From Nageia nagi (lineage: Eukaryota; Plantae; Pinophyta): 64,000 bases of DNA. A program made the position numbers and the translations under genes. This document shows, in pieces, positions 29,056 through 52,680 of this stretch. Every line of letters begins with the position of its first letter. The first letter of the stretch is position 1. Where the stretch lies: the NCBI GenBank assembly GCA_050084985.1, contig JBITNC010000001.1:202616001-202680000 (forward strand). Reading direction: 5' to 3'. Below the pieces are notes generated by a model. That model did no database searches. It saw nothing but the letters and a program-made list of their open reading frames with translations, and was not told where the DNA came from.

Positions 29056-31242
29056 GCTCAAACAACACACATGTATCTTGTTCCAAGATCACCTTAGAAC
29101 TCCAAGAATGTCATTTTGCTATTTAAATATCATGATGATGGTCATACTCTTTCTTATATACATTGTCAAAATACTTTATCAATGATTGTGATCATCAATG
29201 ATTATGAAAATGCTTATTAATTATTGCCAAAATGCTTATCAATGATTGTCAAATGCTTATCATGTTCAATACTATATCAATTTTTATCATGTATGTCTTT
29301 TACATTGATAAAAGGGGTTGTTTGATCACTATCGAGGAATGCTAATGTCCCCTATGCTACCCAAGGAAACTCCTAAACATCTTCTCCCTTGCAGTACTCT
29401 TTTTCTTTTTAGTTATCATTTTGCTTTGAACTCCTTCCAACCAAGGTTTTCACCAGCAATTCAAGGCAAAAGGGGCAAGTAACAAAGAAAAGAATACAAG
29501 ATTATCTCCAATTTCAAGATGTGTGTGGCCTAGAGCATCCCTTCCAAGACTCATGCGACTTGCTTCAAGCAAAGAAATGAGCACATTCAAGCTTCCACTT
29601 ATCCCTTGCATCCATGAACAAGACATCAATTGTCTCCAATATCAATAGAAGTTCATATCCTTTATCACTTTGGGAATGTGGTATCATGTCTCTCCACCAC
29701 ACTCCCAAAGGGGGCAAACTACAGATACTTAAATATGATTTTGCTATTTTAAAATACATTCATTTAAGTATCTAAAATTATTTATTTAGAAAAGTGCAAA
29801 TGGGGCATAACTAGAGGCTAAATTCAAATTTTATGATTATTTAAAGGTCATGTCGATTAACTTCATGTTTAAGTAATGTTTTCCTATGAAATGCTTCGCA
29901 TTTTAGATTTTAAGGGATATACAAAGATTATCAAGCAAGATCATCACTAAGCTCATCCATTGGTTTCGAAAAACCATATTCTAGCACAAAGTGATAGAAC
30001 GTCAACAAAGAAGATCGTTTTCACTTAAAGAAGATCATCATAGCAAATTCATTACGAGATCCTCATCCATTCAAGATGCATGCAGGCTAGAACAAATTTT
30101 TAAACCGCATGTGGCCTAGAATTTCTGCTACAAAATGCATGCAGCTTGGAAAAAGAATTAAATTTTCAGACTTCTCGTTTTGTGCTGATCATTTTGATGT
30201 ATGACATGATAGGGTTTCAATCACAAATAGAGTTAATCTTTAAATGTTTTTCATCTACACATCATTCATCCTGCTGATTTTAGGATTTTCCCTCCAAAGC
30301 ACAATGTGTTCAATAGCAAGATCATGATTCTCGTCTAAACCAGCTAGGTTTCTCAACCCATCTTTTCATATTTCTATTTATCATTGATTATTGTTCTTTG
30401 TACATTTCAACTTATCATTGTTTTGTCACTATTCATTGACATACTATAACAACTTAATCCGCAAAGACCTTCGCTAACAAATACTCAACATATTAAATAA
30501 TTCATTTTTGAGACATCTGATCATATGAAGGTTGTGTGTGCTAGGATCACTATCTCTATATCATTGTTGGAAAACTCAGATTCAACAAAAATTCAACAAG
30601 GCAAATTTTTTAGAGTACTTAAGGACTCGGAGATTACTTGGCAAAAAAACCTCAAACATTTCATGAAAAAAATTAAAAAAAATATATTTAAATATGAAAT
30701 TAAAGAGTTGCAAAGTAAATTTTCTATTAGATTTAAATGACATAAGTACATTCATCATCTGTGATCATCCAAAATACAACAATGTAAATAGTCAAGTAGT
30801 TATATTTCTAATTTCTAAAGTCTAAACTTTAAGAGTCTAAATTGATGGTGAACCTTCAAATCCTCCACGAACAAATCTATAGAGCAAAAGAGAGAGCCAA
30901 TGAGAAATGAGAGAAAAAAAGGGCATTTTAGGACTATCGCTAAGTATTTTGTTTTTGGGAGGGGGGAGTTCCACTTTGCACGGTAGATAGCTGAGCACTT
31001 GACAAGTTACTTGGCTCAAGGAAAACATGCAAGAACTCGTCAATCAAACACTAGTTTTCCTACTATGCTCTATATCATGTTTTCATGAAATGATGATTAA
31101 TGTTGTATGATAAATGTATGGTAAATAATTCTATGCTTTTGAATAATTTATCATATTATGAGACATTGTTATACTCGGAAACTACCTTCTCTTTCTCTCT
31201 ATGTATTTCAGGTTACATCAACATATTTACGTAAAGGGGTGC

Positions 31243-31406
31243 AGAGAGAGAGGGGGGGAGGGAGAGAGGGAGAGGGAGAGTGAGAGAGAGGGGGGGAGGG
31301 AGAGAGGGAGAGGGAGAGTGAGAAAGAGTGAGAGATAGAGGGGGGGAGAGGGGGAGAGGGAGAGAGGGGGAGAGAGAGAGAGGGGGAGAGAGAGGGGGGG
31401 GCGGGG
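31243..31406. repeat. Purine-rich (GA/GGA) microsatellite-like tract
   Basis: About 160 bp almost entirely G and A. Confidence 0.95.
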
Positions 31407-31701
31407 AAACTTCATGGGGATGATGTCAAACTTATGAGGAAATATCCTTGAGAAACACAATAGTGACAAGGTTGCAACCAATTCCATGTTTGATCTCATT
31501 TCACCCTTTTGAATACTTAAAAATTGATTGTTTTGAATTTCTCATCCTACATAATCAAAATTGAAAAAAAGAAAATAAACCATAGTGTTATTTAGAAAAT
31601 TCAAGAAAAAGGATATTTATGGGAGTACAAGATTTTATATTTTACAAAACACCTAAATAATGCATTAATACCTTATTTAAATAATAAATATATAAGCTTA
31701 T

Positions 31702-34700
31702 GGAGATCTGATGGAGCATTCAAATGGGCAAAAGGGCAAGAGAGATGAGGTTAGGCTTTTAGGGGGTGGTAAAGAGTTGGAGCAACGATGTGATTGCGAG
31801 AGAGCGCATTGTGGTCGAAAGCTAGTTGAAGGACATTGGTTTGCTGCTAGGCGTCCTTTAGAACCAAGTGTTACTGGTTTGAGATTGTATTTATCAGCAT
31901 TGGGAGTGGAGGACATAGGGTCTCCCTAGAACACTTCAGTTGAAGGACGACATGTTGGGGTTCAGTCTAAGAGCAAATCCTGGGTGCATGTGATCTAGGA
32001 TCAAGGAAGAAAAAGGAAATCTAACCACATTGCTGACTTTCACCCTCAACAAGGTAGACTACTCATTACCCATGCTATTATTGCTTTTCTTCAAGCACAA
32101 GGAGCATACGATTTGGTGGGAAGTCTTTTTGGGCCCAAACCTAATTTGGATACCCTTAGGCAGTGGACAATGGGGAAATGGAGACTGAGAGGCCTATTAG
32201 ATATCACAACCTTGTTAAAAGGGTTTTTCCTGGTAAAGTTGGATTTGTTAGAAGACATGCAACAAATCTTATCAAGTGGGCCATGGTTCTTTAGGAAGAG
32301 AGGCTTTTTCTTGAGGAGATGGGGGCCAAATTTTGATCCCAACACACAACGATTTAATATGGCACCCATGTGGATTAGGCTTCCAGGTCTACCTATGCAT
32401 TACTGGCATGAAGATGTTTTGATGGGGATTGTTAGGGTTGTAGGAACTCCAATAGTGTTGGACACTGCAACTAAGAATAGATCTCAAATGGTGTACATTG
32501 GGATTAGTGTCCAAGTTGATCTAGATGGATCTCTACCAAACTCTATTACCTTGGTCTTAAATTTGGGGAACATGGGTGTAGGAGATAGAGTATGAATCAA
32601 AACCCAAAGCCTGTTCCAGTTGTGCTTAGCTAGTCATATGGCAAGTAGATGTACACTGGAGAATTCAGGAGGAGATATTGCAAACCAGGCTACAAGGAAC
32701 CAAAATAACCTGATGCCAGTTAACCAGGTAGATTTCAAAACCCTCAAGGAAGTGGCAATCAAATCATCTCTAGAGAGAAGGCTTGAAGAAGAGAGTCTTC
32801 ATCCCAAAGGAGATCAAGAGATACAGGAGAAGGTCGGGGATGGTGTCCCAGAGAAGACCCTGAGGGAAAGGGTAGCAAGTAGCGACACACTCGAAGACAA
32901 AGGAAAACTGAGATCCTCTTGTGAATAAAGGGCCTCATGATAGGGGAGCTTTGAAGAAACAACAGAATGACCAATGGGTAGTAGTCCAAGTAGCGAAAGG
33001 AGGAGAGGAGATACCAGAGACTCAGCCTTTGCCCCATGTTGGGTCTACTTCAAAGGTGTTATGGGAGGGGGGGGGCACCCAGAATGAGGAGATGATCCTG
33101 GAAACACAGTGGAGTAATCCACATATTCAAGTGGAAGAAGGGGAAATTGGATCTCCAGGTACGTATCCTATGATCCAAAGAAAAACACCAGTAAGGAAGG
33201 AAGTCTCCCAAGTTGATAGGGCAATGGCGAAGGAAACCTCTGAGGAACAAAGATGTCTAGTTCCATACCTCCAAACAGGTGAGTCATAAACTAATGTGGA
33301 TGTAATGTACACTGTTAGTGATGAGGAAGTAGTTGAGCACGTTGTGAAGTTGGAGCAACTCCTAGGAATCAACCCATCGGAACATATGAGGAAGGCCTTA
33401 GTGGATAAATTTCAAGTCAAATTGACTCAACAAGCTAGAGAGAAAATAGAAAGAGAATTAAAAAAGGAAATGGAGGGCCCGAAACCTTACCCCCAAAAGT
33501 ACTATTTCACGATTGACCAGCTTTTGGAGAAAGGTCTTTCTAAAAAAGAGGCCACAACATTACAGAAATGGGATCAAAGCCACCATGTTTTTTGACGGAA
33601 TAAGTTTGAGGAAGTGGCCAGGCAAAACCAAGGGGCAGGGAACCCTACCAAAAACACTAGGAGCAGAAGAGGAAGGAGACATTAGTTTTTTTTTTTTATG
33701 GACCTTTGACTGGTGTTGATTATGTGTGCATCAAGGTATCCTTTTGATATATCTTAAACCCTAATAAATTTTGTTTTAGTGGATTTAAATAAGTTTAGGA
33801 ATCTCGAGGATTCTTTGTCCAATTTATCTCCTTTGCTGCTTTTGTGGGATTGTTTTGAATATCTTAGACTGATGTAAAAGGTAGCTGGTCCTTTTTTTTG
33901 GTAAGGGTAAAAAAGAAGAGCGGGTTTTCCAAAAAACAGGGCCCCAAAAACTGTATATACATCATGATAGATATTCAACAGAGTTACATTTGAGACAAAA
34001 ACTAACACAAAGTTTCTTCCGTAAATGAGAAGAGAACTATGGAATATAGGTTATCAACTTACTCCATTGGTTCCTATTCATACCACCCTTTCACATGCTG
34101 CCACAATTAGATAATTATCAATCTCAAGATTTAAATCTGCTAGTGTGTGATTCAACAATTCTCTGAGTGAATCTGCTACAAAACCTGTAGCATGTAGATT
34201 ATCACCTCATTTCTTCTTAGTTTTGAGGAGGAATCCTCTTCCAAGGCCTTCAAGTGTTGCTTGTTTTCCATCAACGACTTCCTTTGCAGTCTCTAATTCT
34301 CTGAGTTCTCCTTCACTTGGTCATCCAACATGTCTTTGTCCTATATCAAGTTTCTTCGAAGTACTACGTAGTACTCTTTGATAGGTTTCTTTACTTGTAG
34401 TGTCATTAGATTGAGTTGGACTAGCTCGATTCTTTCTACTTTTCACCGTTTGCCATTCCTCATTCTAAGAACGATCAAGATCCATACTGAGCTAGATAGG
34501 TTCAACTGCACGATTTGATGGACTTTCATTGGTTGGAGGGTTATTTTTAGCCCCTGTAACAAGATCATCAGTGCCTTGCGCTGTCTTGCCATCTTCTAGC
34601 CTGCTTGACTTATTCTCCATAGTCTATTTAGGGTTGATCTCACCTCCCTCTAGGTCATTCTCCTCCATTTCTTATTCAAAATATGGTTCCTCCTAGGGTG

Positions 34701-35640
34701 GTTTCGATCTCCATTATTTTTTATCCTGTAGCACTCTCTTTGGGCACACTCTCGCAATGTGAGCAACCTAATTACATAGGGAGCATAAGTAGTTATTTGG
34801 TTCATACTTAATTTCTTAGTCAAAATCTCGTCACTGCTTCCAGAGTGTTAGCTGTTGGGATTTTCTCCCTGAATTCTACCATGACACAATATCGAGCCGA
34901 TATCATTTGTGTTCGAGCTTTTGTTACATCATCCGTTTTGATAAATCTTCCAAAGGAATTGCTAATTTCTTCAAAAACATTTTGGTGCCAAAGGTCAAAC
35001 GAGAGCTTGGATAGTGTAACCTAGATTGGTGCTCTCAAGATCTGTACTTTAGTCAAGTCAAATCCGAGCTACCTTCTCTCCAGGAATAGTCCCCTGTTGC
35101 CTATGAACCATCCAAAGCTCAGAATTTCATTTCAATCCTCTTCATTCCCTAAAACAAAGAGCAAATAGTCATTTGGTAAGGCTATTATATCCAGACTTCC
35201 TCTTAGTTTCCATTTGAACTTCGCCCATCTCCGCACATCATCTATATTTGGCCTAGCTCCCTCTACTTTGCCAATTAAGCTCAGTCGCCCTCTTTCCGTT
35301 GTCTGATCTGTATCTGTTCGTGGGACTTTAGATGAAGCTTCCCATTCGGTTCCCATGTTGCTTGCAATGGGGGCATCGATTTTTGCCTCCTGGGAAAAGA
35401 GTTCCCGCCATGGTTTTTGTCTTTCCATTTGCCTACAGGGCAACTCGAAAACCTAGGCGCATTCTAAGAAGCAAAAGAAAGTTAAATAGATTTACCTTGC
35501 TATTGGTGTAGGAGGTTCCTATCTGTCACCATTCCCCTCCCGACCTTCTACGGACAAGATTAATCCTGCTTTCGCTCACCTAGGTCTTAGTAGCGGGTCC
35601 TTTCAAAACCCTTCTTTTTTTTCTATTTGTCAAAAAATAA
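31702..35640 (+). mobile_element. ORF1-only L1-derived element (a), interrupted near its 3' end by element (b)
   Basis: TSD ATAAATATA(t/a)AAGC(t/a)TAT at 31684-31701 and 35641-35658; DUF4283-type ORF1 (GPWFFRKRGFFLRRW, APMWIRLPGLPMHYW) and zinc-knuckle remnant; A-rich tail tgtcaaaaaataa; no ORF2. Confidence 0.8.
33895..35589 (-). mobile_element. ORF1-only L1-derived element (b), ~1.7 kb
   Basis: TSD GTAGC(t/g)GGTCCTTT at 33881-33894 and 35590-35603; tail ttacccttaccaaaaaaaa; ORF1 LIGKVEGARPNIDDVRRWAKFKWKL, CSLCN.VAHIARVCP knuckle, ends KQATLEG...KTKKK stop; no ORF2. Confidence 0.85.
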
Positions 35641-37049
35641 ATAAATATAAAAGCATATTTAGACTAAATGAATAATTTAGAATTATAGTTTGAAATTCCA
35701 TGCAAATTTGAATGGGCAATACTACAAATACATTTGAAACACTAAGGAGGCGCCAAAGGTTTTAGAAGCTCCAAGGGAAGCGTAGTTGTTTTTGCTTCCC
35801 ACTTACCTCCTCCTTGGGAAGAAGAGGCCATCATCACTCGTGCAAAGGGGAAAAGACCACCCCATTCTTCCCTTTTGCTAGCTTGCACGTGTGCATGCAA
35901 GGTAAGGAGAGTCATAGCTTTTTATAAGCCATGAGACCCCTTGCTTGCCAGATGTGGAAAATGGAGGATGAATTTTGGAGAAACGAATGGAGGAATCAGT
36001 TTATAAGGGAGAAAATGTACTCCAGACTTCATCTAAAATTGGGTAACGGTTGTGTCTTCCCCAATTTTGCTATCAATTTTCTAAGCTAATCCTATATTCT
36101 ACTCAGCTGCATTTGTATTCACTCTAACCACGAAAAAAAATCTAAGTTGAGTATATTAAAAATATGTTTGCATTTGTTTTTACTTTTTAGCCAATAATTT
36201 ATAATGGGTATGTCTCAAACTGTTTTTATTTACTCTAAACATGAAAAATCTGAGTTGGATATATTAGAAAACTTGTTTGCATTGTTTTTAACCAAAACTT
36301 TATAATGGGTATGCTGAAATCTAATGTATTTATTCCAGAGTGGAATATGTAAACATTGATTTGGCTTTCATTTGTCAACCTAGTGTTGTCACAAAATTGT
36401 GACCCTTTAAAAAAATGTTTGAAACTAGTGTCACGAATCACAAATATTGTCTGAATACAACAGATTTGAGACTATCCAGCTATAGCCTCTTTTATGGGTT
36501 AATCTCTCCTCAACAACATAATTGCAAACCCAAGATTGTAACCCTCTTTTAGATCCTCTCTACAGATTTATCAATCAAAGATCTACCAAAAAACAAAATA
36601 AAAGCCATTGCCTATTTGTGTAAAAGTTGATCAATTCACCAAAAGATGACCATATAAAACTACAAAAGACCGATGCTTAAACCTCAACATAGTACATTGG
36701 GCATGGAGTCAGAAGAACAACAAAGAAAAGGTAAATATTGAACAACTTTGTTCAAATAATGCAACATGCATGTATAAACCCTTGTTCAAATAATGTGACT
36801 AATGTAGTACAGCATTCACAAGAGAAATACAATGACAGCATTCAAGTAATGTAATACTATCATAAATGACCACAAAACTCATCACATAACAGGATACTAG
36901 AACCAAACAAGGAGCCCTTTGTAATGAAAATTCATTACATTTTGTTTGTGAGATACAACAAACATGCTATACTCTCCAATTTACAACTTCCTCCATTCAA
37001 ATAATGTCAGAGGCACAAAAAGATCCTAAGCTAAAATCCTCAGCTATCT

Positions 37050-40000
37050 TGAAAAAACTTGCAGCTCCTAGAAACGATCTGAGACTTTGCATTCAGTCTT
37101 GGTTCCTGAATTTGACAAGAGAAACACGGAAAGATGAGGAAAACACAGGACAGACTAAGCACTCGTACCTCACAGGTTCCAAAGTTCAAAAATTGCAAAA
37201 GGATCAGGAGCTTGTCTTCCTTCTGCTACTTAAAAGTTTTTAAATTTCTTCATCTTTGCCTTGGGCAATAATAATCCTGTCATATTTATCATCTTTTCCT
37301 TTTACATCTTCTAAGTGTACTATAAACTCCAACACATTCATAAAATCAGTCATTTCCCTGAAAATCTTGTTGAGACTGGGAAATTTATTGTAAAAGGCGT
37401 GTATGGTATTTTTTTGTAAATTTCCACAAATGGTGACAAAGCTATCCTATTTTCTTTTAGTGGGTTTGTCTGAGTAGCACTTGTAACATGTTCAGCCTGT
37501 AACAGTTACAGGGCAGCTAAGTCCTGTACTATCTGTATTAGCTGAGATTGCTCTAAATTCTTTTAGTTTCTTTTCCAACTCTAACTTTTCCTACAACAAT
37601 GTCTTGCTGCTCTCATATAGACTTTTAACTGTTGTCCCTGAAGTACCTGTGCTCATTTGATAGAAAACTGGGGGGGTCTTGTTGCATCTTGAGATTCATT
37701 CCCCTGTAGTTAGTTCAACAGTGGTTGCTTTTGCTTCTGGAGGCAAGGAAACTGAAATGGTTATAGGTGTAACACTCACAGGTGGTGGTGATGATGGCCT
37801 TTGCACGATGGGAGTTTCAGAAACATCCACTATTGCTAGAGGGTCTCTCCCTTCTTCAATCATTTGCAATTTTTTATCATCAATTGCAGTTAACTTCTAA
37901 GTTACCAGATACGTCTGCAGAAGGGGTGGATACGGGTACGATATGCACCAGATACGGATCCGGATTCGAAACGCCTGTGGATTTGTTCAGGGTGCATTTA
38001 TTTGGAGTCGCATACACTGCCGACGTACCTGGGACATACCCAGGTGTATTGGGATGAACCCAGCACGTATCCATAGCATTTGGCAGATTTTTAAATGAAG
38101 TTTATCATTTTTTTATTGTTTTTTTATTTTTCTCCTTGACTTTGACTAATTGAACATGGGAAACCCTAAAAGTTACCTCTTAAAGGCCTTGAGCCTTCTA
38201 AACTCATTCATTCTTGTTCATTTTTCTTGCAACAGCAAATTATTTTCCCAAGAGGCTGAGCATTGTCTTCAGAGTTGACGAGTGATCAAAGGGAGCTTCT
38301 ACGAGGATTGTATTGCCATTCCTACTCATTTGCAAGTGTTCATTGGCTGCCAAGAAGATCGGAGAAGGATCTTTTTGCAAAGAGGTAAGTTTTTTCAAAT
38401 TTTTCTTCTTTCTTTTCAAGCTTGAAGCATAGAATAAAAATACGGTTTTTTGAAAATAAGGCCTAGGGCCAAATAAGAAAAATACATCAAAGACAATAGA
38501 AAAATACAGGAAAAAGGGGAAAAAAAAGCCAAAAATACTATAGAAGGTAAGTATTTTTAAAATACGGTTAAATACAGGACCCATGAAAATACGAGTTTAA
38601 ACGGAGTTTTTTTTATTCTATGGCTTGAAGTTTGAGTTTGTTTATTTATGTTTTTAATTCTTACTTTTAGTTTTTTTCCATTAGTTTTAGTTTTTTTATT
38701 TATGTTCACCATTATGGCTTCATGTGTCGTTGAATCTTCCTCAGCCAACTGCTCTTAAGATGTTGTAATTTGGTGCTCTAAAGAAGTGGAAGCACCTGCA
38801 ACCAGCTTGTCTTGTTGTGAAGGAACAACTTGAGAAACTCATTGCGGACGTAGTATCTACATTTTTCAACACATACAGGAGAAGTGAAATTCTTTGCAAG
38901 TAAACATCCATTTCATTATCCTCATCCCAGATCTTCAACGTTGTCTGGCAACAATGGTCCTATATTGAGAGGTATGTTCTCAAAGTATTTTTGTTTTAAA
39001 TCTGTCAATTCCTTAGAATCTTTTTGCCAACAAATTCCAATTTGTAATAGAATCTGACCTCTTTGGGATATTTATTCCATACTACTTATGCTGGTCCACC
39101 CTTTTTCAATGTCTGACTCAGCTCATCTTCAAAGTTGTTTCGTGCATGAGTAACACAAATATAGGTACCAAGTTACCAACCTTTTTAATCAGATCCCTAT
39201 GGTTTTTCCAGGGATAATATGGCCTCCAGGTTACTTCTTGCAAACAAAATTCATCCATTTTCTCGATACTACTCAACATGGATTGGTAACCATTATACAG
39301 ATAATGGCCAAACCTAAAAGGTGGTACAAGCCAAGGGATTTTACCCACTTTTTTTAACAGCTTCACTTTGGCATCTTTCAATCATTTGCCTTATAATCGA
39401 TTAATCTCCAATCCAATAAAAGAAAAAGATCCAAAGACAAGCAGGGCTTTTGTCGGTATTTTGAACCCATAAACTCTTATGAAAGAAAAATCTTTAACCA
39501 AAAAATAATCACCAACATGGTTGTCCACCAAGAAATTATACAAAGAATCACTGGACCACTGTGGGGTTATCCAAATAAAGCGATGTACATTGTTGGAAGG
39601 AAATCTCCATAAAATTTACCTTTATTACCAACTCCACCTCCTTCATGAATCATGACAAGATTATCTTGGATATACTCTACATCTACCCGTCCAAGGCTAT
39701 GAATTGTTTGATTGTCTGGCTATCCTATCATGAAGTGTATGAAAATTGAGTACAAAGAAAAATGAGACATCATGTCATGATCTTGCTCTACTGTTGTTTT
39801 CAGAGTAGTCATCTCCTGATGAATTTTAGAAAATTATATATATTGATGAGCCTGTATCTATTGTTTTAATTTTTGACAAACAGATATAAAATTTTCCTTG
39901 GCACCCAATCAAAGTCCTTTTCACCTAATACAATCTTCAACATATCTACAAAATCCATCACCCAAAACTTCAAGATACCTTTTCTAATTGGGAATTGTTT

Positions 40001-40500
40001 TCGAATTGGCGCATTACTTCTTAAGTGTGTTTAATACAAGGTAGTGTGATAATCTTCAAGGATTGTTGAATTATTTCTTGTTGGTTTACAGTTACTGAGC
40101 TAGGGTAAAACTTGAAAATTCTTCTAAATTCATTAGAGTTAAATTGAAAGCAACACGGCCATCTTTTCTCCTAAAGACTCTATTTTGAGGATCATAATTT
40201 TCAGCAAACCAGGTCATCAAGTCTGAGGAGAGACATACTTGCAGGCAGATGATTTACCCAAGTTGGAATCCCATTTATGACAGTATGGTGTGATGTGCCT
40301 TTGAGGATTTGGCCTTGTTGTAGAGCTTCTTCATCAGCATCGAGGATATGTGAGATATCTCTTCCACATTGCGGTTTGCTAAATCGATGATATGAATATC
40401 CTTTGAAATAACCCCACCTACAAATTGCTGATAAGGGCTTAGCTTAGACTTGTCATATTTCTCCTTAGCTTAGACTTGTCATATTTCTCCATCTTTAAGC
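37050..40500 (-). pseudogene. Degenerate accessory ORF of element D (split by hAT fragment)
   Basis: FAENYDPQNRVFRRKDGRV; GDYFLVKDFSFIRVYGFKIPTKALLVFGSFSFIGLEINRL; LQEVTWRPYYPW; C-terminal EKLELEKKLKEF coiled-coil-like segment. Confidence 0.6.
37895..38900 (+). mobile_element. Probable hAT 5' fragment nested in element D
   Basis: GC-rich subterminal repeats (gatacgggtacg, cgtacc, cgtatcc) followed by a leader with an intron-like AT tract. Confidence 0.5.
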
Positions 40501-40656
40501 TCGTATTATATCTCTATTAAATGCTTCAATTTTGTTCTGTCTGTGCAATTTCTTCAGCTACGAATTCTTCTCAGTTCATAATGGATGCAAGTAGGCACTA
40601 TGATACGTTTGCCATGCTTTTATCTACGTGAAGCATGCCACATTTAACTTGCCACC

Positions 40657-41804
40657 TGTAATATTCCAAATATTTTCTAAGACTAAAATATGCAAATTAT
40701 GCACCAAATATACCAAATAAAATGCTCCAAAAATCAATTACACATGCCAGAATATCAATGTCTCACTTAAAGACAAAAAATATCACTCATACACATCCAC
40801 AAACCTGACGTCAAGCTTCTAGAGGCAAGATAATTACAAATAGACAACAAAATGAGACCAATCTACGGATATCAATGTGCCAACAGCTGAATTAAGCAAT
40901 GAAGAGTGATTAAAAGCCTCAAATCTGCCCAAAGGGCTCAACGCTGGCCTCCAAGGAGTCAACTAAGGCACATACACATGTAAATATGCTCACTGCTGGA
41001 ACAATGGATGGGATAGCCACACTCTCTCAAGTTCTAAATCCTCTCCACTAAAGGAGCCCTCTCCAAATCCTAGAAACCAACTAAATGGTACGACTACAAC
41101 CTTGGAATACCACCAGCTAGACTAAGATGTTGCACCTTCGCCGTAGATTAGCAAGATCCCTCAACCTACAAACCCTCCTAGATGTTGCACCTAGAGGAAG
41201 ATTGCTTGATGCTATGCCAAGACTTGTGCCTTTTGAACAAAAGAAGAGATAATCCAAAACTCAACATATCTCTGCAATGATGCTCCAATGCCTAATATAG
41301 CTCAAGTCTGGATCTAGATTATCACCTCAAAATCAATCAATGCCTCCCTATTCCAACGTTAGCCTCCTAGAGGCCCTCAAATGCCTCAAACATGTCATAA
41401 ATGCTCATGCGTGGGTTTAGAGTCTCCCCAAGGTGTGGCGTGGTCTTCAAGGGTGATGGGATGCCTCCAAGTCCAACATTGGGGTCCTAGAAGTCCCTCC
41501 ATGTCATGCATTGGGTTTCTAGGAGTCATACATGTGCCTAGATCCTATTTTCATGACAATTCAAGGCCTTGGGATTCCCACAATGAATTCTCGGGATCTC
41601 CAAGTACATAAAATAACATTTAAATATGCTAGCCTATGCTTGTGGGGAAAACGTCCCTCTTGGGGCTCATAGTGGGGTCCAATTGACCATTATTATTTCT
41701 ATCCCAAGTAACTAACAACAAATACATAAATAAATAAATATTTACAAAATGGGAATCCTTAGGATCCCAAAATTAATTATCTTTTACAAAAAGGGGATGT
41801 TACA
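40657..41804 (-). mobile_element. Solo LTR of chromovirus family B
   Basis: TSD CCACC at 40652-40656 and 41805-41809; TGTAAT...TGTTACA; right end closely matches 5450-5679 and 11400-11640. Confidence 0.92.
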
Positions 41805-43026
41805 CCACCCTTGTATTAATTTCTTTAATTCTCCTTTTATCACCTTTTAGCTAGCATTCTTTTATTTTCTACAAAATTCTCAACAATATCAGTGCCAATA
41901 ATATTTTTGATTGATTTATTTCAAGGTAATACAAGTTGTTTATAAGTTTTGCCTCACCAATCGTAGATCAATAGTCCAGATGGAGCCTCATTGTACAGGA
42001 TGACGGTTTGAAAAGAACACAAGGGGTTGTTGATACACAACAATAGAAGATATCCTCCACTTGATAGATCCAACCTTTGGCAAAACATGATGAAATGGAA
42101 GGGGCAGATGGTGATGGATGGTAACTTTCACTTCACGACATGGACGATGAGCAGAGAATAGTGGAAGGTAGTAGACACATGGCATACAACAACTTCTGCT
42201 TGATGGGATAGACAATTAGCATAGGTTAGCGAAAGATGTCCATTATAGGACACATGGCATGTGGCAAGTGTCTCCACTTCAATGGATCTTTGTTCTCGTG
42301 GAGCTTGGTAGGTAGTGTGGTATACGTTGATGGCAATGCTAGTTTCCACTTGATGGGCTAATGCATTAGCGAAACACTGGAGTAAATGGGACACATGGAA
42401 AGCAGTGGAGACTTCCGTTGGATGGGACATTGTTTTGGCAGAACATGGCGAAGACCTAAGGATACATGGCAAGATATGATGGTCTCCACTTGACGATCTT
42501 ACAACCTAGCTGGAATTAGTGAAGAGTAAAAGAAGGGTCTCAATGTTCCATCAAAGGGTGACACATGTCTCACCATTTGCACATCTAGTACCTTTACATT
42601 CTTGTTAACCAAGCAACAATCTTTAGTCAAACCCAAAGCTATCCCTTTCGAGATGTTCTGACAACCTTCGTAGCCACTTACAAAATCACCTAAGCCTACC
42701 AAACCATTGTCTACCTTCAACAAAACCTTTATTAGATTGTTAAATGCTTGCCTGTCCATCTGTTCACTATATGTTATTGGACATAACCTATTACCTTGAA
42801 GGGGAATCAAGCTTATTACAACAATCGGTTAATTTGTGGTAAAGGCTTGTCTGACCAAAGATGTTTTACTCGACAGTGGGGTAAACTTCATTTCTTTAGA
42901 CAAACTTACAAATTTTTACCCAACCAACTCTTTTCAATCTCAAAACTTTCAAGCATGACGATTTGAAGTTTTCAAGGTTCATCAATAACAAACTTAATCA
43001 CTTTTATTGGACAATTTTAAGCATTT

Positions 43027-46000
43027 TGTGACACCCCCCTTGTACTTCTAATGGGACCTGTTGGGTCATCTTGTATTATATTCCTTTCATGTATTTGTAT
43101 GTACTTTGTTGTAACTCAAGATAGAAGGTTTAATGGATCATGTGAACCCCACTATGAGCCTCAAGTGGGACCTCTCCCTCCTAAATACTAGAATAGGCAT
43201 GTTTTGTATTGGAGATCACGGATTGTGGGAATCCCAAGGTAGATTTATACATTATAATGTTGGATGGTCATCAAAGTGCTAGCGCTAGCTTGGGGAGGGC
43301 CCCATACACCCACATTGGCTTATTACAGCTCCAAGACCCCCACATTGTCATATTATGTGTTTATGACACCCACGTTGGCACTTAAGTGAATTGGGGCCCC
43401 CAATTACCCAACGTTGGATTAGAAGGGTCTGGAATGATCCCAAAGTGAGCTTCCGACATGAGAATGGTATAAATAGACATTGGAGCTTGAGTATTGGACA
43501 GCTATTGATCATTATTACTTCTACTACAGACCTTCGGGCACAAGTACTAGCAGCACTAAGCAAACCATCCCTAGACGGAGTGTCTAGAGGGCGATTAGGC
43601 ATTGGAATCTTGATCATCTATGGCTTAGGTGGAGCATGTAGCCCATCCGGTGGTATTCCGAAGATTCACTTCTACCTTCAATGGTTCACCAGGGTTCGAG
43701 GAGGGCTCCCTCAGTGGAGAGGATTCGAAGTCTAAGGGAGTGTGTTTATCCCATGGTTCTACAACTATTCCAGATTGGAGATATCATTGTATTGTGCCCT
43801 AGTTGGCTTCCTAGAGGCTAACAACTGCCCATTGGGCATTGGTATTGTATTTCATCCATTGCATATCATTTGTATAGCCAGAGGGCATTGGATCTCATTA
43901 CTGTGTGTATTATCTCATACCTGTGCATGCGTTGGATCGCATGATGTTATGTACTTGTATTTATCATTTGATGGCACATTAATGTAATAGGATTTGAATA
44001 ATGCATGTATGAGCCAGACGTTGGCATTTTGGGTATTTGAATGTTGAATGTGCATGCCCTAACCCTAACGTTGCATGTTGGAGAGTTTGTATGTGTGTAT
44101 TGGATGCCCTAGACCTAATGTTAGGATTTGATGGTCCAAACTTGCTAGTTTGTGTTTAAAACTAAATTCGAATCATCACAAGTGGTATCAGAGCCTGGAT
44201 CTGGTTAGCCTATGAGGTTAAGATCCAGCTAGCAGCAAATTGAACCAGTAGATTGGGAGGTCTTGCATTTAAAAGGCCAGTTTTAGGGTTAAAACGGCAA
44301 TTTTTTGGGAAAGTCTGAATTCTTAGACTAGGTCATCTTGGGTTCGAAGGACATATCTATAGATCTGAAGGCTGTTTCTAGATATAGAAGGACTTGATCT
44401 ATCATTCTAGCTAATTAGAAAAATTTAATATGAGGGTTTAAGCTAGAGTTTGAAAACTATGGAGGCAATCGTTCAAGAGGATGAGAGGTGGTCATGGATG
44501 AACATGCAGTCAAAAGCTAGGGTTTTTGGCAGTGAAGGAGAGACGCATATATACATGCAAAAGATTGCCAAGAGGAGGAGCTCTACTTTGGTTTGGGGAT
44601 TCACTTCCGAACGAAAGTTTGATGAGCTTATCTCGGCCATTAACAGTATGACCAGAGTGATCACTTCAATGGGTCGGCAGATGGCCGAGTATTGGGAAGA
44701 GATCGATGAGTCAGAGAAGCACCATTCACCCCCACAACATGCTAGTGAGGATCAGGAGGCACCACGCCATGGTCAAATTGAGAACAGGCAAAGAGAAAGC
44801 TTGGCATCACATGCTGGGCATAGAGGAGGTTCGACACCCCATACTGGACATGGAATAAGATTGGCACCCAACATTGTCCCAATAGGCAATTTAACACCCC
44901 ACGTTGAGCACCCAAGGAGTTTGGGCACCCAACATTGGGCAGGAAGAAGAAGTGGCAAGAGAAGAACCTTGGGTCAGCCATATTGACACTCCAAAAAGGT
45001 ATGATAGCAATTCTGATTTTCATAGCAGTAATTCAGAAGTTTTGCATGGTGTTTTTGGATGTGATAACATTGGGAAGAAAGAGGAAAGCCATTGTTGTTT
45101 CAGATTTGGTTTTGGGAGATAGTGATGAGAAAGGTGAAGAGCATGAGCCAAGCATGGAAGAAGATAAAAATAGGAAAGAAGGGAATACTATTTCAGACAC
45201 CATGCAAGGTATGTCAAGTAAAGTTTCAAGAGGTTTCCTTCAAAATGCAATCACACCTATTTGTTGAAAATGTAGTAGGGAACAAGAAGCTTGATGAAAA
45301 GATGAATGTTTCTTGTGAGTATGCATATACTAGTTACATGCCTTTGGTTTCAAGGTGTGATGTGTTGGAGAAGTAAATTCTTCATGTGAATGGAAATAGA
45401 CTTCTAGCTCCATGGGATCCGGGTGTGTTAGCACACAATGGGAGATTTAAAAGAGTGGAGGTGTTCATAGGGGATGAAGAAGACAGCATGAAGCTTTCCA
45501 AATCAGCCTTAGAGAAGAAAGGAAAAAAAGTCTCAGCCTATGATGGAGGACTTGATGGTCCTTGGAGCTAGTTGGATCTTTGGAACATGATATGAGGTAA
45601 TGGCCTCACTTGTTTTAGCTCACTTTAATTGTTGGTGTATTTGCATGAATCCATAGCCTAACTCGAAAGATAGGAGCATGAGAAGGGCATCATACTTTCT
45701 CATGGCACATTCATTTGCAGCCAATACATCAAGAAGAAGGGAGATACACTTGTTGATCTCTGTGACCATTATGTTCCAGAAGATTCATCGCTGCTTGGGG
45801 CAAGGAATCATGTCATTTCAGAAGCTACTTTGCTATTCCAAAAAGCTACAATGTATGAGAGCAAGTCATACATTACTAGGAGGTTTCACTCTTCATCTTT
45901 GTGCTTGGTATGGGCTGATTCAGAAGGAAGATATTCAGATCTGATTTCAGCTATCTTTGAGCTGAGTTGGTACAATTCAAGGGCAGCATTTGATAGGGGA

Positions 46001-47953
46001 AGATGGATGACAGTTGGGACTGAAATGTTGCCATTATTGTTAACATCCCACGCTGAGCATTTAGGAGGCTTGCCATGCCACGTGGTGCATTTGGGAGGAT
46101 TGTCTTGCCACATTGGCAATCCAAGAGGATTGGAGCCCCACGTTGTGGTTTGAGGGGGCTAGAGTTGCTATTGAGAGGTGTCATGTTGTTGGACACCCCA
46201 CATTGAGGTTTGAGGAGGCCAAAGTTGCTGTTGAGAGGTGTCATGTTGTTGGACACCCCATGTTGAGGCTTGGGGAGGCCATGATTGTTGTTTGGGGGTG
46301 TCATGATGATGGGCACCCCACATTGAGGCTTAGGGAGGCCAGGATGGTTGATTGGAAGTTTCAGGAACTAGAGGATAAGATGATTTCTTGCCTCACACTG
46401 GCCTTGAGGAGCATGAGAGGTCTTGAGTGGAGATTGGAGGAGATACTACTACCTAGATGGAGCCTAGCTCTACTTGTTCCATGCTAATATTTATATTTCT
46501 CAGGGTTTTGCAGGTACATCCCAACCTGAATGTGTACACACTCACATGGCTATGGAGATTTGTGACTGAGTATCTGCTAAGGAGTGATGGTTACAGCAAA
46601 CTAGAGAGTTTGCAACTTGCACCAAGACAGGAGCATGGGGCTCCAGCTGTTCACTCTACACCACCGTCCAGCATGGTGCATATTGAAGTTGCATTCCACC
46701 ACCATGTGCTTCGGTTGATAGCTCCTGATGATGCATGGGAGACTGAATGTTGTGATCTCTTGCAATTGCTTGAGGGCAGGAAATTCGAGAGGGGAGGCTT
46801 TGTGATGTCCCCCTTGTATTTTTGATGGGACCTGTTGGGTCATCTTGTATTATATTCCTTTCATGTATTTGTATTTACTTTGTTGTAACTCAAGATAAGA
46901 GGTTTAATGGGTCATGTAGACCCCACTGTGAGCCCCAAGTGGGACCTCTCCCTCCTAAGTAGTAGAATAGGCATGTTTTATATTGAAGATCATGGATTGT
47001 GGGAATCAAGGTAGATTTATACATTATCATGTTGGACAGCCATCATAGTGCTAGCGCGAGCTTGGGAAGGGCCTCATACACCCATGTTGGCTTATTACAA
47101 CTCCAGGACACCCACATTGTCATATTATGTGTTTATGACACCCACGTTGGCACTTAAGTGAATTGGGGCCCCCCAATTACCCAACGTTGGATTAGAAGGG
47201 TCTAGAATGATCCCAAGGTGAGCTCCGAACATGAGAAAGGTATAAATAAACATTGGAACTTGAATATTGGACAGCTATTAATCATTATTACTTCTACTAT
47301 AGACCTTCAGGCACAAGTCTTAGCGGCACTAAGCAAACCATCCCTATACGAAGCATCTAGAGGGCGATTAGGCAGTAGGATCTTGATCATCTACGGCTTA
47401 GGTGGAGCACCTAGCCCATCCGGTGGTATTCCGAGGATTCACTTCTACCTTCAGTGGTTCACCAGGGTTCGAGGAAGGCTCCCTCAGTGGAGAGGATTCG
47501 AATTCTAAGGGAGTGTATTTATCCCATGGTTCTACAACTATTCCAGATTGGAGATATCATTGTATTGTGCCCTAGTTGGCTTCCTAGAGGCTAACAACTG
47601 CCCATTGGGCATTGGTATTGTATTTCATCCATTGCATATCATTCATATAGCCAGAGGGCATTGGATCTCATTATTGTGTGTATTATCTCATACCTATGCA
47701 TGCATTGGATCTCATGATGTTATGTACTTGTATTTATCATTTGATGGCACATTAATGTAATAGAGTTTGAATAATGCATGTATGAGTCAGACGTTGGCAT
47801 TTTGGGTATCTAAATGTTGAATGTGCATGCCCTAACCCAAGCGTTGCATGTTGGAGAGTTTGTATGTGTGTATTGGATGCCCTAGACCTAACGTCAAGGT
47901 TTGATGGTCCAGACTTGCTAGTTTGTGTTTGAAATTAAATTCGGATCATCACA
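43027..47953 (+). mobile_element. Intact-structure non-autonomous LTR retrotransposon (element E), chromovirus-derived
   Basis: TSD CATTT at 43022-43026 and 47954-47958; LTRs 43027-44180 and 46801-47953; PBS TGGTATCAGAGC 44183-44194; PPT GAGAGGGGAGGC 46787-46798; 2.6-kb interior without RT or integrase. Confidence 0.95.
46130..46350. repeat. ~60-bp tandem repeat, 3-4 copies, in the interior of element E
   Basis: gagaggtgtcatgttgttggacacccca recurs at 60-bp spacing. Confidence 0.85.
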
Positions 47954-48127
47954 CATTTCTTAGGTATTTATAACTTGAAATGGAGTTAAGTATCAAGAAT
48001 GGTCGATTTGTATGGCAAAAGGTGTTCCCAAACCAATTGTAACCAAAATTTGAGGATTCCTTAGTAATGAATACCCTAAAAGGTTTGGAAAAATTCTAGG
48101 GGCAATGTTGGACAGTTCGACACCTAC

Positions 48128-48503
48128 GTACATATATTTCAATTTTGGCTTTTAGTTGCCAACCTAGGTATTTAAATTTCGATTTTTGGCTTTCATTTGC
48201 AAACCAAGATATGTATATTTCAATTTTAGCTTTCATTTGCCAACCTCAGCATGTAGATTTCAATTTTTGGCTTTCATTTGCAAACCATGGCATGTAAATT
48301 TCGATTTTAGCCTTCATTTTCAAACCAAGGTATGTAAATTTTGATTTTGGCTTTCATTTGCCAAACTGGATATGTAAATTTTAATTTTTGACTTTCATTT
48401 TCAAACCAAGGTATGTAAATTTCAGTTTTTGGCTTTCATATGCAACCTAGGGTATGTAAATTTCGATTTTGGATTTCATTTGCCAACCTGGGTATGTAAA
48501 TTT
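48128..48503. repeat. Minisatellite, ~40-41-bp unit, about 9 copies (one more unit at ~36345-36383)
   Basis: ggtatgtaaatttcgattttggctttcatttgccaacct repeated. Confidence 0.92.
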
Positions 48504-48739
48504 AGAATGTTTGTCAATTGTAAGTTAATGTAACAGAATTTAGAATGTTTACCAATGCGTTATTCTTTATTTTTATGTTACAGTATCAAATATATATTAA
48601 TAAGGAGGGTGGTTAGGAACAGACCACACGACCATCTTAGCCTATCATCATATAAAAGATGCACTTCAATAAGAATAAAATACCACTGTTTTCATCTCTT
48701 TAAGGTATGAAAGCCATTTTATCTTGATCCATCATAGAA

Positions 48740-50740
48740 ATTGATGATGACAGACAGGCGAAAATTCAGAGACAGATATTGTGACATCCGACAAAAGTCT
48801 CAGCACATTTGAGAGAAGAAATAAATTCTACCAGAGACATCAAGAAACAGCCTGAGGAGCTAACATCCCACAGAAGAATTGAAAACCATGAAAGTTCGAG
48901 ACTGAAACCCTTAAGAAACTGTTACAGAAGTAAGTGTTTTATGGCAGGAAGTAAAGAGGAGCCAAATCTAAAAAAAAAAGAGATCAGTTACTTCTATTCC
49001 TTCATTTGGGACTTTGCAGCCGTAAAAGGGTTACACGAGGTTATTCAGTTGAAAACCCTAGCACTGAAAAAATATAATTTATATACGAATAGAATTGTAG
49101 AATATGAGGATGAAGCAAGAAAGTATAACTGTATATATACCAACCAAAACCATGAAACAATTGTTGCGATTTGCCTGTCTTTAGAAATCCTGTGTAAGCC
49201 CCAGAAACAATGGAATTTACATCGTCATATTGAACTCCATTTTTCTATAAAAGATAGTAGCAGCCTCGGAGAACCACAGATTACAGGATCGAAATTTAAG
49301 AAACACATTGCACTCTGAAAATGTTTCTGAAGTACTTTATCTGTAAAATGTCGAAATTTTGAAAATATTTTTGGACTGTCTACTGTAAAATCTTGGTTGG
49401 TTGAAGAACAGAATTTTGTGACTGTAATACAAACTACTGCAGTTATTCTCAAAATTCTAGGCATACAAAGGGAATTATGTTTTAAGCTTAAATTGAAAGC
49501 AAAAATAGAAAACCCTAGATTGCTGAACATTAACTGAAAATCGTGTTTGTCTGTCGATTCTGTATATCTATTGTAAACTGGAATCTGAAAATCGGTTTCA
49601 TATGCAGCTATCTGTTGAAAAAGTATTGTTTAGATCCACAGAAGTTCAAAAAACTGTATATCTAGGAAACAGAATGAGGACCAATATATATACTCATCTC
49701 TTTCCAGATTCAGTGAAGTTGATTAGCCATTACTAATATGGTTGGTAATGTAAATGGGAAGGCACAGGGACCTCAAATTGATAAGCCTCAGCATGGTTTC
49801 AAATGATGTAACTAGGCGAGGAAAAAGAAAGATAACTCAATCTGCTGGAAAACAGGCAAAAGGAAGTCCTTCCAAACCAAAACCCAAATGCTTGTCCTTC
49901 CATATAATCAGCCACCTTAAAAATAAATGTTGAAATAAATAGACAGTATGACCTAACTCAAAAGCAAGCAAATACTATGAAGGTGGATGATTCTTTCAAA
50001 GGTTTTGTTTCTATGGCTTCTTCACGTAGAAGCATCCACATCTATTTCATCCAAAAAAACATAATAGCTATAGATGTTCTAAACTGAATAGCATTCTGGA
50101 TGCAGCAATCATCAGAAATTTCAGAATTAGACAAATATCATGTGCTTATCACCAAAATATGAACCATATATCAAAGTGTTTTGTCAAACATATGCAGTCC
50201 AAGAAGAAATTGAATGGTGGCACAGAGAAACTTAATCCAGGACAAAGAAATTAGAGGAATATGAAACAATCAATATTTTCCATAGAGAAAGCACACTAGA
50301 TCCAATTCCAATCATTGCAGCATCAGTGATGACTGAAATGGATTCACTTCATAGTTCTCTGACTCTCATTTAAATTGGAAAACATAGTTCAGATTTCCAC
50401 CATAGATCAAGTTTCATCGATTCTTTGCATGGTCAGATTCTGTGATCAAATGACATATATAGAGTTTCAAAGTTCCAGATTTGACAACCATATATTTCTA
50501 CCTGTGACACAATTTCAGTTTTTCTTTTTCATAGGAATGTTATAGCATATTCTTGCGGAATTCTCTATCACCCATTGCATTTCCTTCAGTGTTTATGCTT
50601 GGAAAAAGCATAGGGCTGGACCAGGGTACGTTATATCACTGATTATTTAGGTATTGTCTGATGCCTGTAAATTTCTACAATACATTTCTTAAGTCACTAC
50701 AAAAAGAGGTATTATCCTGCAAAATATTTTGGATTCATAT
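48740..50740. mobile_element. Possible old solo-LTR-like repeat
   Basis: Distinct composition rich in cagaa/ctgaa words and LTR-end-like gtattatcctgcaaaatattttggattcata; no TSD confirmed. Confidence 0.3.
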
Positions 50741-50832
50741 TAATGAAAGGATGGTTTAGCATTCCTCACAATATCAATGCGTTAAATGCATAATGAATAA
50801 ACAAGTGACATATAAATTTGGATGTTGCTGCA

Positions 50833-52408
50833 ATACTTTCTTAACTTTAGGGAGGTCCCATAGACCATGGCACATATCTAACTTTCTATGCATGTATTCA
50901 CGAGACCTTCTAGAGCCCTGATGGTGCTCTTGCTGAGGCCTCCTACACTTCTACGTGGGTTCACCAACTTGTTTGTAACTATTCATGACTGCCACCTATC
51001 TGCACATAACCTTCCAGAACCCATACAAGGCCTCCCACACTTTTGCCAGGATTAATCAGGCTCACTTCCAGCTTCTACATGGTGTTGTACCTAGGTGCCA
51101 TGGAAGGGTCCAATGCAGACTGAAATTCAGCCAATTGGGCAAGTCTCTTCAATTCTGAAAGTACAAAGGTAGCTATTGATGTTCCATTCGAGCCTAAATT
51201 TGAGAATGACTCTTGGAATTGCAAGTCTGTCCATCCTCAACAATCTGGTTGAAAATGAGGAAAATCTGAAGGAAAAATTCCCTGATTGCGAAATTTGTTG
51301 GAGCAAGGCCAAACATTGATCATATCTAGAAATGGGCACAAATCAAATGGAAGATCAAAGGGCACCTGGAGGTAAGCACTCCCCCTAAAGATTTCAGAAT
51401 GTCTTCTTGTTTAATTTCAATCTTGCAATGGATATGGAAGCTGTCCTCAAGAAAGGCCTTTGGTTCTATGCTAAGAAGGGTTGTTTGTTTCTCAAAAAAA
51501 TGGCATAAGGGTTTCGGAATATCAAACAAAGCAGTTGGGACATTGATCGTTGTTGATTTGACCACCAAAAACAAGACTAGAATGCTTGAAGCCAAATTTT
51601 GTGTCAACGCGGACCTGACCCAAACCCTACCCAGGAAAATCATTCTGGACACTAAAGACAGCCCTTGGGAGTAGAAAAATTGTTATGAGCACCTTCCGTC
51701 CAGATGCACCACCTGCAATAAGGTTGGACACTCGAGAAAGGATTGTCTTGTGCAGAAATGAACTCGCCAAAACAATCAAGTTAATCAGGAATGGAGCATC
51801 AAAAACCTTACCCACATGGCACCTGAGAACATTGAAACAAAAAATTCTTAGTTCATAGTTTAATGTTGAAGTAGGAAGTTTTAGGTACAGGTGTTTCAAG
51901 TGCAAGATCACAATGTCAAAAAAATCCCGAGCAACCCCAGCCCTCCAAAACCCATCCCTCCTTTGGAAGCTTCTCCAGAAACGCAGCTAGATGTTCCCCA
52001 GGCCACAATTGACGTGGATCTTGCTTCCAAGTTCATGGAGTAGTCAAAACAAATTAACCAGGAGTTCAAATACAATCGCGGAAGATAGTAAAACTCCTGG
52101 AACTATTGGAATGCCCCCTGAATCAACAATTCGAGCCAAAGACACATCAAAAGCCATTGCTAACATAATCCAACGCACTCTTGAACAGAGTGGGTGTGTC
52201 ATATTAAATTGTTTTTTCATCAATGGAAGGTTACTGGTACTTTACTAGTACTTTTCTGGAACTACCATGGAACATCAGTGGAAGGCTTCTGTATTTTTCT
52301 GTATCTTTTGTATATCTTTAAATGCTCAAAAATGAAATTGTCAATACAGGTTTTGAGACCCTCTATAAAAAAACAAAAACTAATTTATTTACCTTATCAA
52401 AAACAATA
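50833..52408 (+). mobile_element. ORF1-only L1-derived element (c), ~1.6 kb
   Basis: Perfect 13-bp TSD GGATGTTGCTGCA at 50820-50832 and 52409-52421; ORF1 remnant (KKWHKGF, AVGTLIVVDLTTKNKTRMLEAKFCVNADLTQTLPRKIIL); tail ttaccttatcaaaaac; no ORF2. Confidence 0.85.
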
Positions 52409-52680
52409 GGATGTTGCTGCAGACTAATCACCTTCTTGACCCAAAAATAAAGTGATTCTATATTAAAAGAAATGGAAAATATTCTTTGAAACACAGCAGG
52501 TTATGTAGAATATATGCATCAGCATGGCATACATTATGGCTACCAAAGTAGATACTCACTCAACATACACAAAAAACGTAATGAATAAAGCCTATAATGC
52601 TAGAATTTATGCAAAGATCTTCAGCCATATCACTTTCCTAGGAACCAAACATAAAAGTAAACAAAGGAATCAGAATAAAC

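Follow-up and report, generated by a model that had tools for sequence, protein, structure and literature searches.

We analysed a 64,000-nucleotide stretch of the conifer Nageia nagi (contig JBITNC010000001.1, positions 202,616,001 to 202,680,000; hereafter "the window"), in which a sequence-only reading had placed three retroelements, each described as carrying nothing but a remnant of the first open reading frame (ORF1) of an L1-type long interspersed element (LINE), followed by an A-rich tail and flanked by target-site duplications (TSDs). Reading of positions 31500-35800 and 50600-52600, with translation in all frames, delimited three bounded elements, which we refer to as (a), (b) and (c) (Table 1). 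Elements (a) and (c) run on the forward strand and (b) on the reverse strand. All three lie where they had been placed, except that the ends of (a) are corrected from 31702-35640 to 31698-35639. Within (a), positions 33895-35603 are taken up by (b) and the second of its duplication copies, which leaves (a) a net length of about 2.2 kb.

Each element carries a DUF4283-type L1 ORF1 remnant, in line with the initial description. The Pfam match of (a) has an E value of 1.1e-31, and tblastn matches reach 9e-59 in (b) (34838-35380, 53% identity to homologue P0042) and 1e-18 in (c) (51276-51824, homologue P0001). DUF4283 and zf-CCHC were the only Pfam domains found in the elements. The zinc knuckle had been noticed in (a) and (b) alone; it is also present in (c), and in all three it directly follows the domain. 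The combination of DUF4283 with zf-CCHC_4 is a hallmark of the ORF1 protein (ORF1p) of plant L1 elements (PMC5203782; PMC11288735). A HMMER scan of 1.8 billion representative proteins returned 10,346 homologues of the (a) domain. The long homologues also bear Exo_endo_phos, RVT_1 and zf-RVT, and we therefore take them to be gene models of plant L1 LINEs. Among named homologues, the nearest are short Cryptomeria japonica (RefSeq) models annotated as "uncharacterized protein"; they are accompanied by unnamed Logan contigs, and the set is in keeping with a gymnosperm host. Aligned back to the window with tblastn, the 150 best homologues matched three places only (31855-32892, 34405-35440 and 51234-51848), and there only the DUF4283 and knuckle parts.

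The breaks in the ORF1 of (a) are stops or frameshifts in an otherwise nearly continuous frame, and its DUF4283 domain sits in a 160-codon open stretch. A search with this 160-residue domain for homologous proteins at 1e-10 found none, though it was limited to shared 5-mers and a narrow length range and says little. An AlphaFold (AF2) model of the domain reached a predicted local distance difference test score (pLDDT) of 66, and when this model was searched against the PDB with Foldseek, the best matches listed were nearly all RNA recognition motif (RRM) proteins, all of them weak (E 0.02-0.3). Type I ORF1 proteins are RNA binders that join an RRM to a zinc knuckle, and the weak matches of (a) agree with this; taken together, the modelling is no more than suggestive of an RRM-like RNA-binding domain. 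The part of ORF1 that follows the knuckle had no relatives in Pfam, in BLAST against the 150 homologues and nine metagenome loci (described below), or in ESM Atlas. We considered a captured gene as the source of this part and rejected it on these null results; the segment is better read as a putative lineage-specific tail. The total 3' untranslated region (3'UTR) of (a) is about 330 bp, compared with the 200-300 bp that had been proposed for all three elements, and the ORF ends of (b) and (c) are too decayed for their UTRs to be measured. Element (c) is the most damaged copy of the three: between 51380 and 51560 its DUF4283 has lost about 30 codons, including the conserved WVRLPGLP..W motif, and the frame changes twice.

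Table 1. Coordinates and supporting details of the three elements in the window.
Feature	Position	Strand	Details
Left TSD of (a)	31683-31697		AATAAATATATAAGC; 14/15 identical to right copy
(a), 5' part up to insertion point of (b)	31698-33894	+	Sequence reading; flank-repeat contig ends at ~31692-31708
ORF1 remnant of (a)	31711-33595	+	~628 codons, from ATG 13 nt inside the element to TGA; ~6 breaks (three-frame reading)
DUF4283 of (a)	32140-32505	+	Uninterrupted; Pfam PF14111, profile positions 1-122 of 124
CCHC zinc knuckle of (a)	32612-32652	+	C-x2-C...H-x4-C; broken by a 1-nt deletion
3'UTR of (a), first part	33596-33894	+	No ORF2 similarity; contigs of other copies enter from ORF1
Last 36 nt of (a)	35604-35639	+	3'-terminal signature AAAACCCTTCTTTTTTTTCTATTTGTC and A6 tail
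Right TSD of (a)	35640-35654		AATAAATATAAAAGC; 14/15 identical to left copy
TSD of (b), beside its 3' end	33881-33894		GTAGCTGGTCCTTT; 13/14 identical to other copy
Element (b)	33895-35589	-	Nested antisense in the 3' end of (a); A8 tail is the T-run at 33892-33899
Post-knuckle/3' segment of (b)	34039-34706	-	Over-abundant in public runs (summed contig depth)
CCHC knuckle of (b)	34744-34785	-	CSLCN*VAHIARVC (* = stop); one stop
DUF4283 remnant of (b)	34823-35284	-	3 in-frame stops; Pfam fragment weak (E 0.006)
TSD of (b), beside its 5' end	35590-35603		GTAGCGGGTCCTTT; 13/14 identical to other copy
Left TSD of (c)	50820-50832		GGATGTTGCTGCA; 13/13 identical to right copy
Element (c)	50833-52408	+	Sequence reading, frame translation
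DUF4283 remnant of (c)	51285-51671	+	Frameshifts and stops; internal loss of ~30 codons
CCHC knuckle of (c)	51705-51746	+	Intact, CTTCNKVGHSRKDC; Pfam zf-CCHC 21.1 bits (cut-off 20.8), zf-CCHC_4 E 6.4e-6
3'-terminal signature and degenerate A-rich tail of (c)	52355-52408	+	GAGACCCTCT...TTTACCTTATCAAAAA
Right TSD of (c)	52409-52421		GGATGTTGCTGCA; perfect 13-bp repeat

Target-site duplications, absence of ORF2 and shared 3' ends

The direct repeats bounding the elements are present at all three, as had been described, and measure 13-15 bp rather than up to 18 bp. Their significance was assessed with a chance test on 3000 random position pairs in window DNA, using the same spacings with a latitude of +/-25 bp and scoring as TSD quality any perfect run of at least 11 or one-mismatch run of at least 14. 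Repeats of this quality arose in only 2/3000 pairs (P ~7e-4), and we therefore regard the TSDs of (a), (b) and (c) as real. The tails that precede the repeats likewise agree with the earlier description: six A residues close (a), eight close (b), and (c) ends in a degenerate A-rich stretch. The sequence contexts of insertion are few (n=3); those of (a) (tttaaat/AATAAA) and (b) (ggttttg/AAAGG) fit a T-rich/A-rich site and appear L1-endonuclease-like, while that of (c) (aaattt/GGATG) fits upstream only. ARAGORN and Rfam found no tRNA, 7SL or 5S head in 31000-53000, so the elements are not short interspersed elements.

We next consider what the elements lack. The ORF2 queries were the ORF2 portions of six L1 gene models, all of angiosperm origin. 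Against (a), (b) and (c), at E values up to 10, these queries produced only scattered, strand-random noise and revealed no remaining ORF2 edge; against the whole 64-kb window, at E values up to 1, they produced one chance-level match (E 0.70) outside the three elements. The spans between the TSDs had been described as holding ORF1 alone, and on this point tblastn agrees, with only noise in the elements and clear signal in positive controls. The controls were drawn from nine metagenome loci retrieved with a five-sequence alignment. Three of these (L001, L003 and L004) are autonomous L1s, in which the ORF2 matches begin about 600 bp after the ORF1 match and have E values of 1e-33 to 1e-49; because the same queries matched them, the search was able to detect ORF2. 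Of the other loci, L008 has a weak, partial ORF2 match and the remaining five end too soon after ORF1 to judge. On their metagenome contigs, the autonomous plant-type L1s occupy L001:289-2801, L003:510-3741 and L004:6001-9873, each with a DUF4283 ORF1 followed by endonuclease and reverse transcriptase.

The window's sole reverse transcriptase belongs to a different kind of element. It lies at 10152-10670 on the reverse strand (RVT_1, E 1.4e-30) and adjoins an integrase core at 6330-6827 on the same strand (rve, E 1.5e-4), in reverse-transcriptase-then-integrase order. The pair is the remnant of a Ty3/gypsy-type long terminal repeat (LTR) retrotransposon, unrelated to (a)-(c).

The three elements resemble one another little except at their 3' termini. 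Their mutual divergence, remarked on from the start, is evident at both levels: nucleotide similarity is limited to one 53-bp match between (b) and (c), and the amino-acid identity of their DUF4283 domains is 33-51%. In a domain tree of 157 sequences, for which the broken domains of (b) and (c) were read through with X at the breaks, the three fall apart, and only (b) has supported neighbours (P0042, P0112 and P0128). We take the elements to represent three ORF1 lineages, deeply diverged from one another. A similar short signature is nonetheless found at the 3' end of each: A(A/G)A(A)CCC..TCT, followed by (C/T)CAAAAA. The 3' ends of (a) and (b) align well across about 35 nt, those of (b) and (c) share TTTACC(C)TTA(C/T)CAAAAA, and a regular expression for the combined signature has four matches in both strands of the window (128 kb), three of which are the element termini. 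We treat this shared signature as a lead only. The fourth match, at 9934-9972 on the forward strand (AAAACCCCATCTCC...CCCAAAAA), may be due to chance or may mark where a further LINE-dependent element ends. As a source of such ORF1-only transcripts, premature polyadenylation within ORF2 was considered and ruled out, the 3'UTRs having no endonuclease-domain similarity in any frame; the signature would fit a canonical LINE 3' end that survived the loss of ORF2, which also counts against premature polyadenylation.

Related copies in public sequencing runs

If (a) and (b) were retroposed as families, other copies should share their internal junctions and termini while lying in different surroundings. 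Evidence on copies comes from Logan contigs of four public runs (X1, X3, X4 and X5) that match 31200-36200 at an identity of at least 80%; the test covers the stretch of (a) and (b), and its contigs are short, with depths that are not copy numbers. Runs X3 and X4 are of the same species, since their pieces of the flank differ at 0-1 positions, and X1 and X5 are relatives in which the flank is about 92% identical. The matching contigs number 3009 (X1), 26 (X3), 168 (X4) and 2387 (X5), and most are less than 95% identical.

Contigs of (a) type from X1 and X5 tile 31892-33759. Three contigs of other (a) copies (33297-33759, 33298-33756 and 33334-33695) cross the ORF1 stop at 33595 into the same 3'UTR, and the number of distinct contigs per run is 6-14 at sites from 32760 to 33722 in X1 and X5, and 4-14 at sites to either side of that stop. 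Because these collinear contigs cross the stop, other copies of (a) share its ORF1-to-3'UTR junction. In X3, one contig has the 3' end of (a) with no (b) inserted in it and departs from the window sequence at 35645, which indicates another copy of (a) with the same terminus in a different place; 14 loose letters of this contig resemble (a) on the left side of the point where (b) inserted. A high-depth flank-repeat contig stops at the 5' boundary of (a). The left flank itself (31367-31700) is a high-copy repeat, covered by a single X1 contig at a depth of 256-330 that ends at the boundary of (a).

For (b), same-species contigs of 85-95% identity span 34009-35580 and reach the 5' leader, and in three X4 contigs the match stops exactly at 33892, the 3' terminus of (b), with sequence beyond it that differs from one contig to the next. 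The pattern implied by the sequence-only reading, multiple copies with a common junction and different flanks, is thus seen in part: other copies of (a) share its ORF1-to-3'UTR junction, and for both (a) and (b) shared 3' ends lie in different flanks. These contig comparisons show that (a) and (b) are members of multi-copy families and not single-copy accidents. The post-knuckle segment of (b) is unusual in abundance: its summed depth rises to 6512 in X1 and 5267 in X5, whereas the DUF4283 part reaches only about 230-330. Each site in the segment is covered by 72-87 contigs, and the depth falls again across the last ~150 bp. This abundance could be a pile-up of 5'-truncated copies with a variant 3' end, or the segment could be a module of another abundant repeat.

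Several contigs bear on the history of the locus itself. A 2.5-kb X1 contig covers the tail and right flank of (a) (35589-36200) at about 92% identity and starts exactly at the 5' boundary of (b), and another X1 contig joins 35651 to 33893 with seven extra letters. The insertion of (a) may be older than the species split, and (b) may be absent from the X1 organism. A 184-nt X3 contig is identical to window positions 35551-35734, across both the (b)/(a) and the (a)/flank junctions; this would be read-through transcription of the locus if X3, whose kind can only be guessed, is RNA.

Weighing the origin of the elements

Based on these observations, we consider it likely that (a), (b) and (c) are independent insertions of ORF2-less derivatives of plant L1-clade elements, mobilised in trans by L1 ORF2 protein (ORF2p). 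The TSDs, the tails, the lack of any similarity to endonuclease or reverse transcriptase and the canonical-looking shared 3' end together argue that the elements were retroposed in ORF2-less form. The sequence-only reading had proposed as much, and the shared junction and 3' ends in copies of (a) and (b) now speak for it as well. The core of this reading, namely that the elements lack ORF2, were retroposed as such and were amplified, has support in the case of (a) and (b) and is plausible for (c). Since families that repeat without ORF2 must be copied by some enzyme, the families imply borrowing from complete L1 elements, as with HAL1 in mammals; mobilisation in trans by L1 ORF2p, and any role for the ORF1p of the elements themselves, are what we infer from this.

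A number of points weigh against such an origin. All three elements have very short A tails. Angiosperm L1s supplied the ORF2 queries, though distant metagenome L1s were detected with them, and no autonomous partner L1 was seen within the 64-kb window. The 3' signature was defined after the sequences had been seen, and RNA folding gave no significant fold in the three 3' ends (z-scores 0.15-0.95). In no single contig is another entire copy present, with its two ends and a TSD of its own, contig depth does not equal copy number, and the evidence for copies concerns (a) and (b), with none for (c).

We weighed three other explanations. In the first, each element is a one-off, dead-on-arrival retrocopy of an aberrant L1 transcript that was internally deleted, spliced or template-switched, and no ORF1-only family exists. 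All three elements are decayed, (c) is without copy evidence, and an internally deleted L1 would keep the shared 3' signature, each of which agrees with such accidents. However, 6-12 distinct (a)-type contigs per run in two organisms share the junction between the ORF1 stop and the 3'UTR, same-species contigs cover (b) from its 5' leader to its 3' end at 85-95% identity, and with three elements within 21 kb the accident would have to be very frequent. We consider this explanation improbable.

A second explanation takes the elements for processed pseudogenes, formed when L1 retroposed the mRNAs of host (domesticated) DUF4283-CCHC genes, and predicts the identical structure of ORF, UTRs, A tail and TSD. 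It could also draw on the short DUF4283-only gene models in Cryptomeria japonica RefSeq and on the enrichment of DUF4283 among the parents of plant pseudogenes (PMC7935947). Yet the annotated Cryptomeria "genes" may be such elements themselves, the 3'-terminal signature is common to three unrelated lineages, and the numerous diverged copies, whose depth increases in the 3' direction, point to amplification of copies from copies and not to a single parent gene. Thus, a pseudogene origin appears quite unlikely.

It is scarcely credible that the elements were inserted as full-length L1s and that later deletions removed ORF2 from each: old repeats often contain deletions, and (c) has one of ~90-100 bp inside its DUF4283, but three independent clean deletions of ~3.8 kb sparing both ORF1 and 3' end would be required, other copies share the junction of (a), and no ORF2 edge is left.

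Given an origin as ORF2-less L1 derivatives, the number of times that ORF2 was lost can be considered. A single old, diversified non-autonomous lineage and repeated loss of ORF2 from different autonomous L1 lineages are equally possible readings of the divergence, and the domain tree cannot decide between them. The state of (b) may bear on the role of ORF1p. Since (b) lies within (a), it is the younger insertion, yet it is the richer in stops: about 14 in ~1.3 kb, compared with about 6 breaks in 1.9 kb of (a), or, in the securely coding domain and knuckle only, about 8 breaks or stops compared with about 3. These counts suggest, though they do not prove, that (b) was copied from a source already unable to encode protein, in which case (b) would not have required an ORF1p of its own.

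The elements can be accommodated in a simple scheme. An element of this type would consist of a short 5' leader, an ORF1 (DUF4283, probably RRM-like, followed by the CCHC knuckle and a long lineage-specific C-terminal tail), a 3'UTR of a few hundred bases, a short conserved terminal signature and an A tail. It would be transcribed, and the ORF2 protein of an autonomous L1 located at some other genomic site would recognise its RNA at the 3' end or the A tail. This protein, with its endonuclease and reverse transcriptase, would nick a T-rich/A-rich target, and target-primed reverse transcription would copy the RNA and leave TSDs of 13-15 bp.

Known ORF1-only elements and implications for conifer genomes

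ORF1-only LINEs have been described in animals, and the literature that we searched (open-access full text only) yielded no description of them in plants. In mammals, HAL1, a non-autonomous derivative of L1, codes for ORF1p only and has arisen more than once (PMC5753468). Like (a)-(c), it combines ORF1 alone with TSDs and an A tail, and it forms families; its ORF1p is of the mammalian Transposase_22 type, however, whereas that of (a)-(c) is of the plant type, DUF4283 with CCHC, in a seed-plant host. In Drosophila, ORF1-only telomeric elements of the Jockey clade rely on the ORF2 proteins of other families, loss of ORF2 has occurred repeatedly, and a lineage left with ORF1 only can give rise to further lineages of that kind (bioRxiv 10.1101/2025.06.09.658640). 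These HeT-A-type elements share with (a)-(c) the plan of a non-LTR element with only ORF1 (gag), but they are Jockey-clade elements that target telomeres and have a host function, whereas the elements here are dispersed, with (b) nested in (a). Because ORF1 type and host differ, we regard (a)-(c) as analogues by convergence and not as members of HAL1 or HeT-A.

Within plants, the closest comparison is with autonomous L1s. The poplar L1 Celine has a DUF4283 ORF1 of 1617 bp, a 3'UTR of about 190 bp, a short poly(A) and TSDs of 10-30 bp, with a mean of 15 (PMC11288735), and the ORF1 of (a) is comparable in size. Celine and the control loci L001, L003 and L004 have the same type of ORF1 as (a)-(c), but in them a ~3.8-kb ORF2 directly follows or overlaps ORF1, whereas (a)-(c) have none. 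Plant processed pseudogenes and L1-dependent retroposons resemble (a)-(c) in having a TSD, an A tail and a reliance on L1 machinery in trans; they differ in carrying host-gene or non-coding cargo, whereas the cargo of (a)-(c) is the LINE's own ORF1 with a LINE-like 3' end, and the copies occur in families.

DUF4283 is the commonest domain among unannotated sugar-pine transcripts and is frequent in black-spruce-specific proteins (PMC5144951, PMC10755193), and ORF1-only elements would explain this abundance in conifer gene sets. A wider reading is that ORF1-only LINEs are long-lived and widespread in gymnosperms, perhaps in seed plants, with ORF1 under selection and a conserved 3' signature by which the reverse transcriptase of a partner L1 recognises them, and that they account for many DUF4283-only conifer genes and transcripts. 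We put this forward tentatively, as a possibility on the doubtful side.

If the elements are real families in a giant conifer-type genome, loss of ORF2 with retention of ORF1 would be a recurrent route within the L1 clade, taken here with a different type of ORF1 protein. They would also offer a natural system for asking whether ORF1p supplied in cis helps an RNA to compete for ORF2p in trans, and the apparently already-defective (b) suggests that ORF1p in cis is not always needed. Should the 3' signature also occur on autonomous partners, it would point to recognition of the 3' end, which is not the usual assumption for L1-clade elements. Finally, if our reading is correct, many conifer gene models and transcripts labelled "DUF4283 domain-containing" or "uncharacterized, species-specific" would be retroelement ORF1s, to be masked in annotation.

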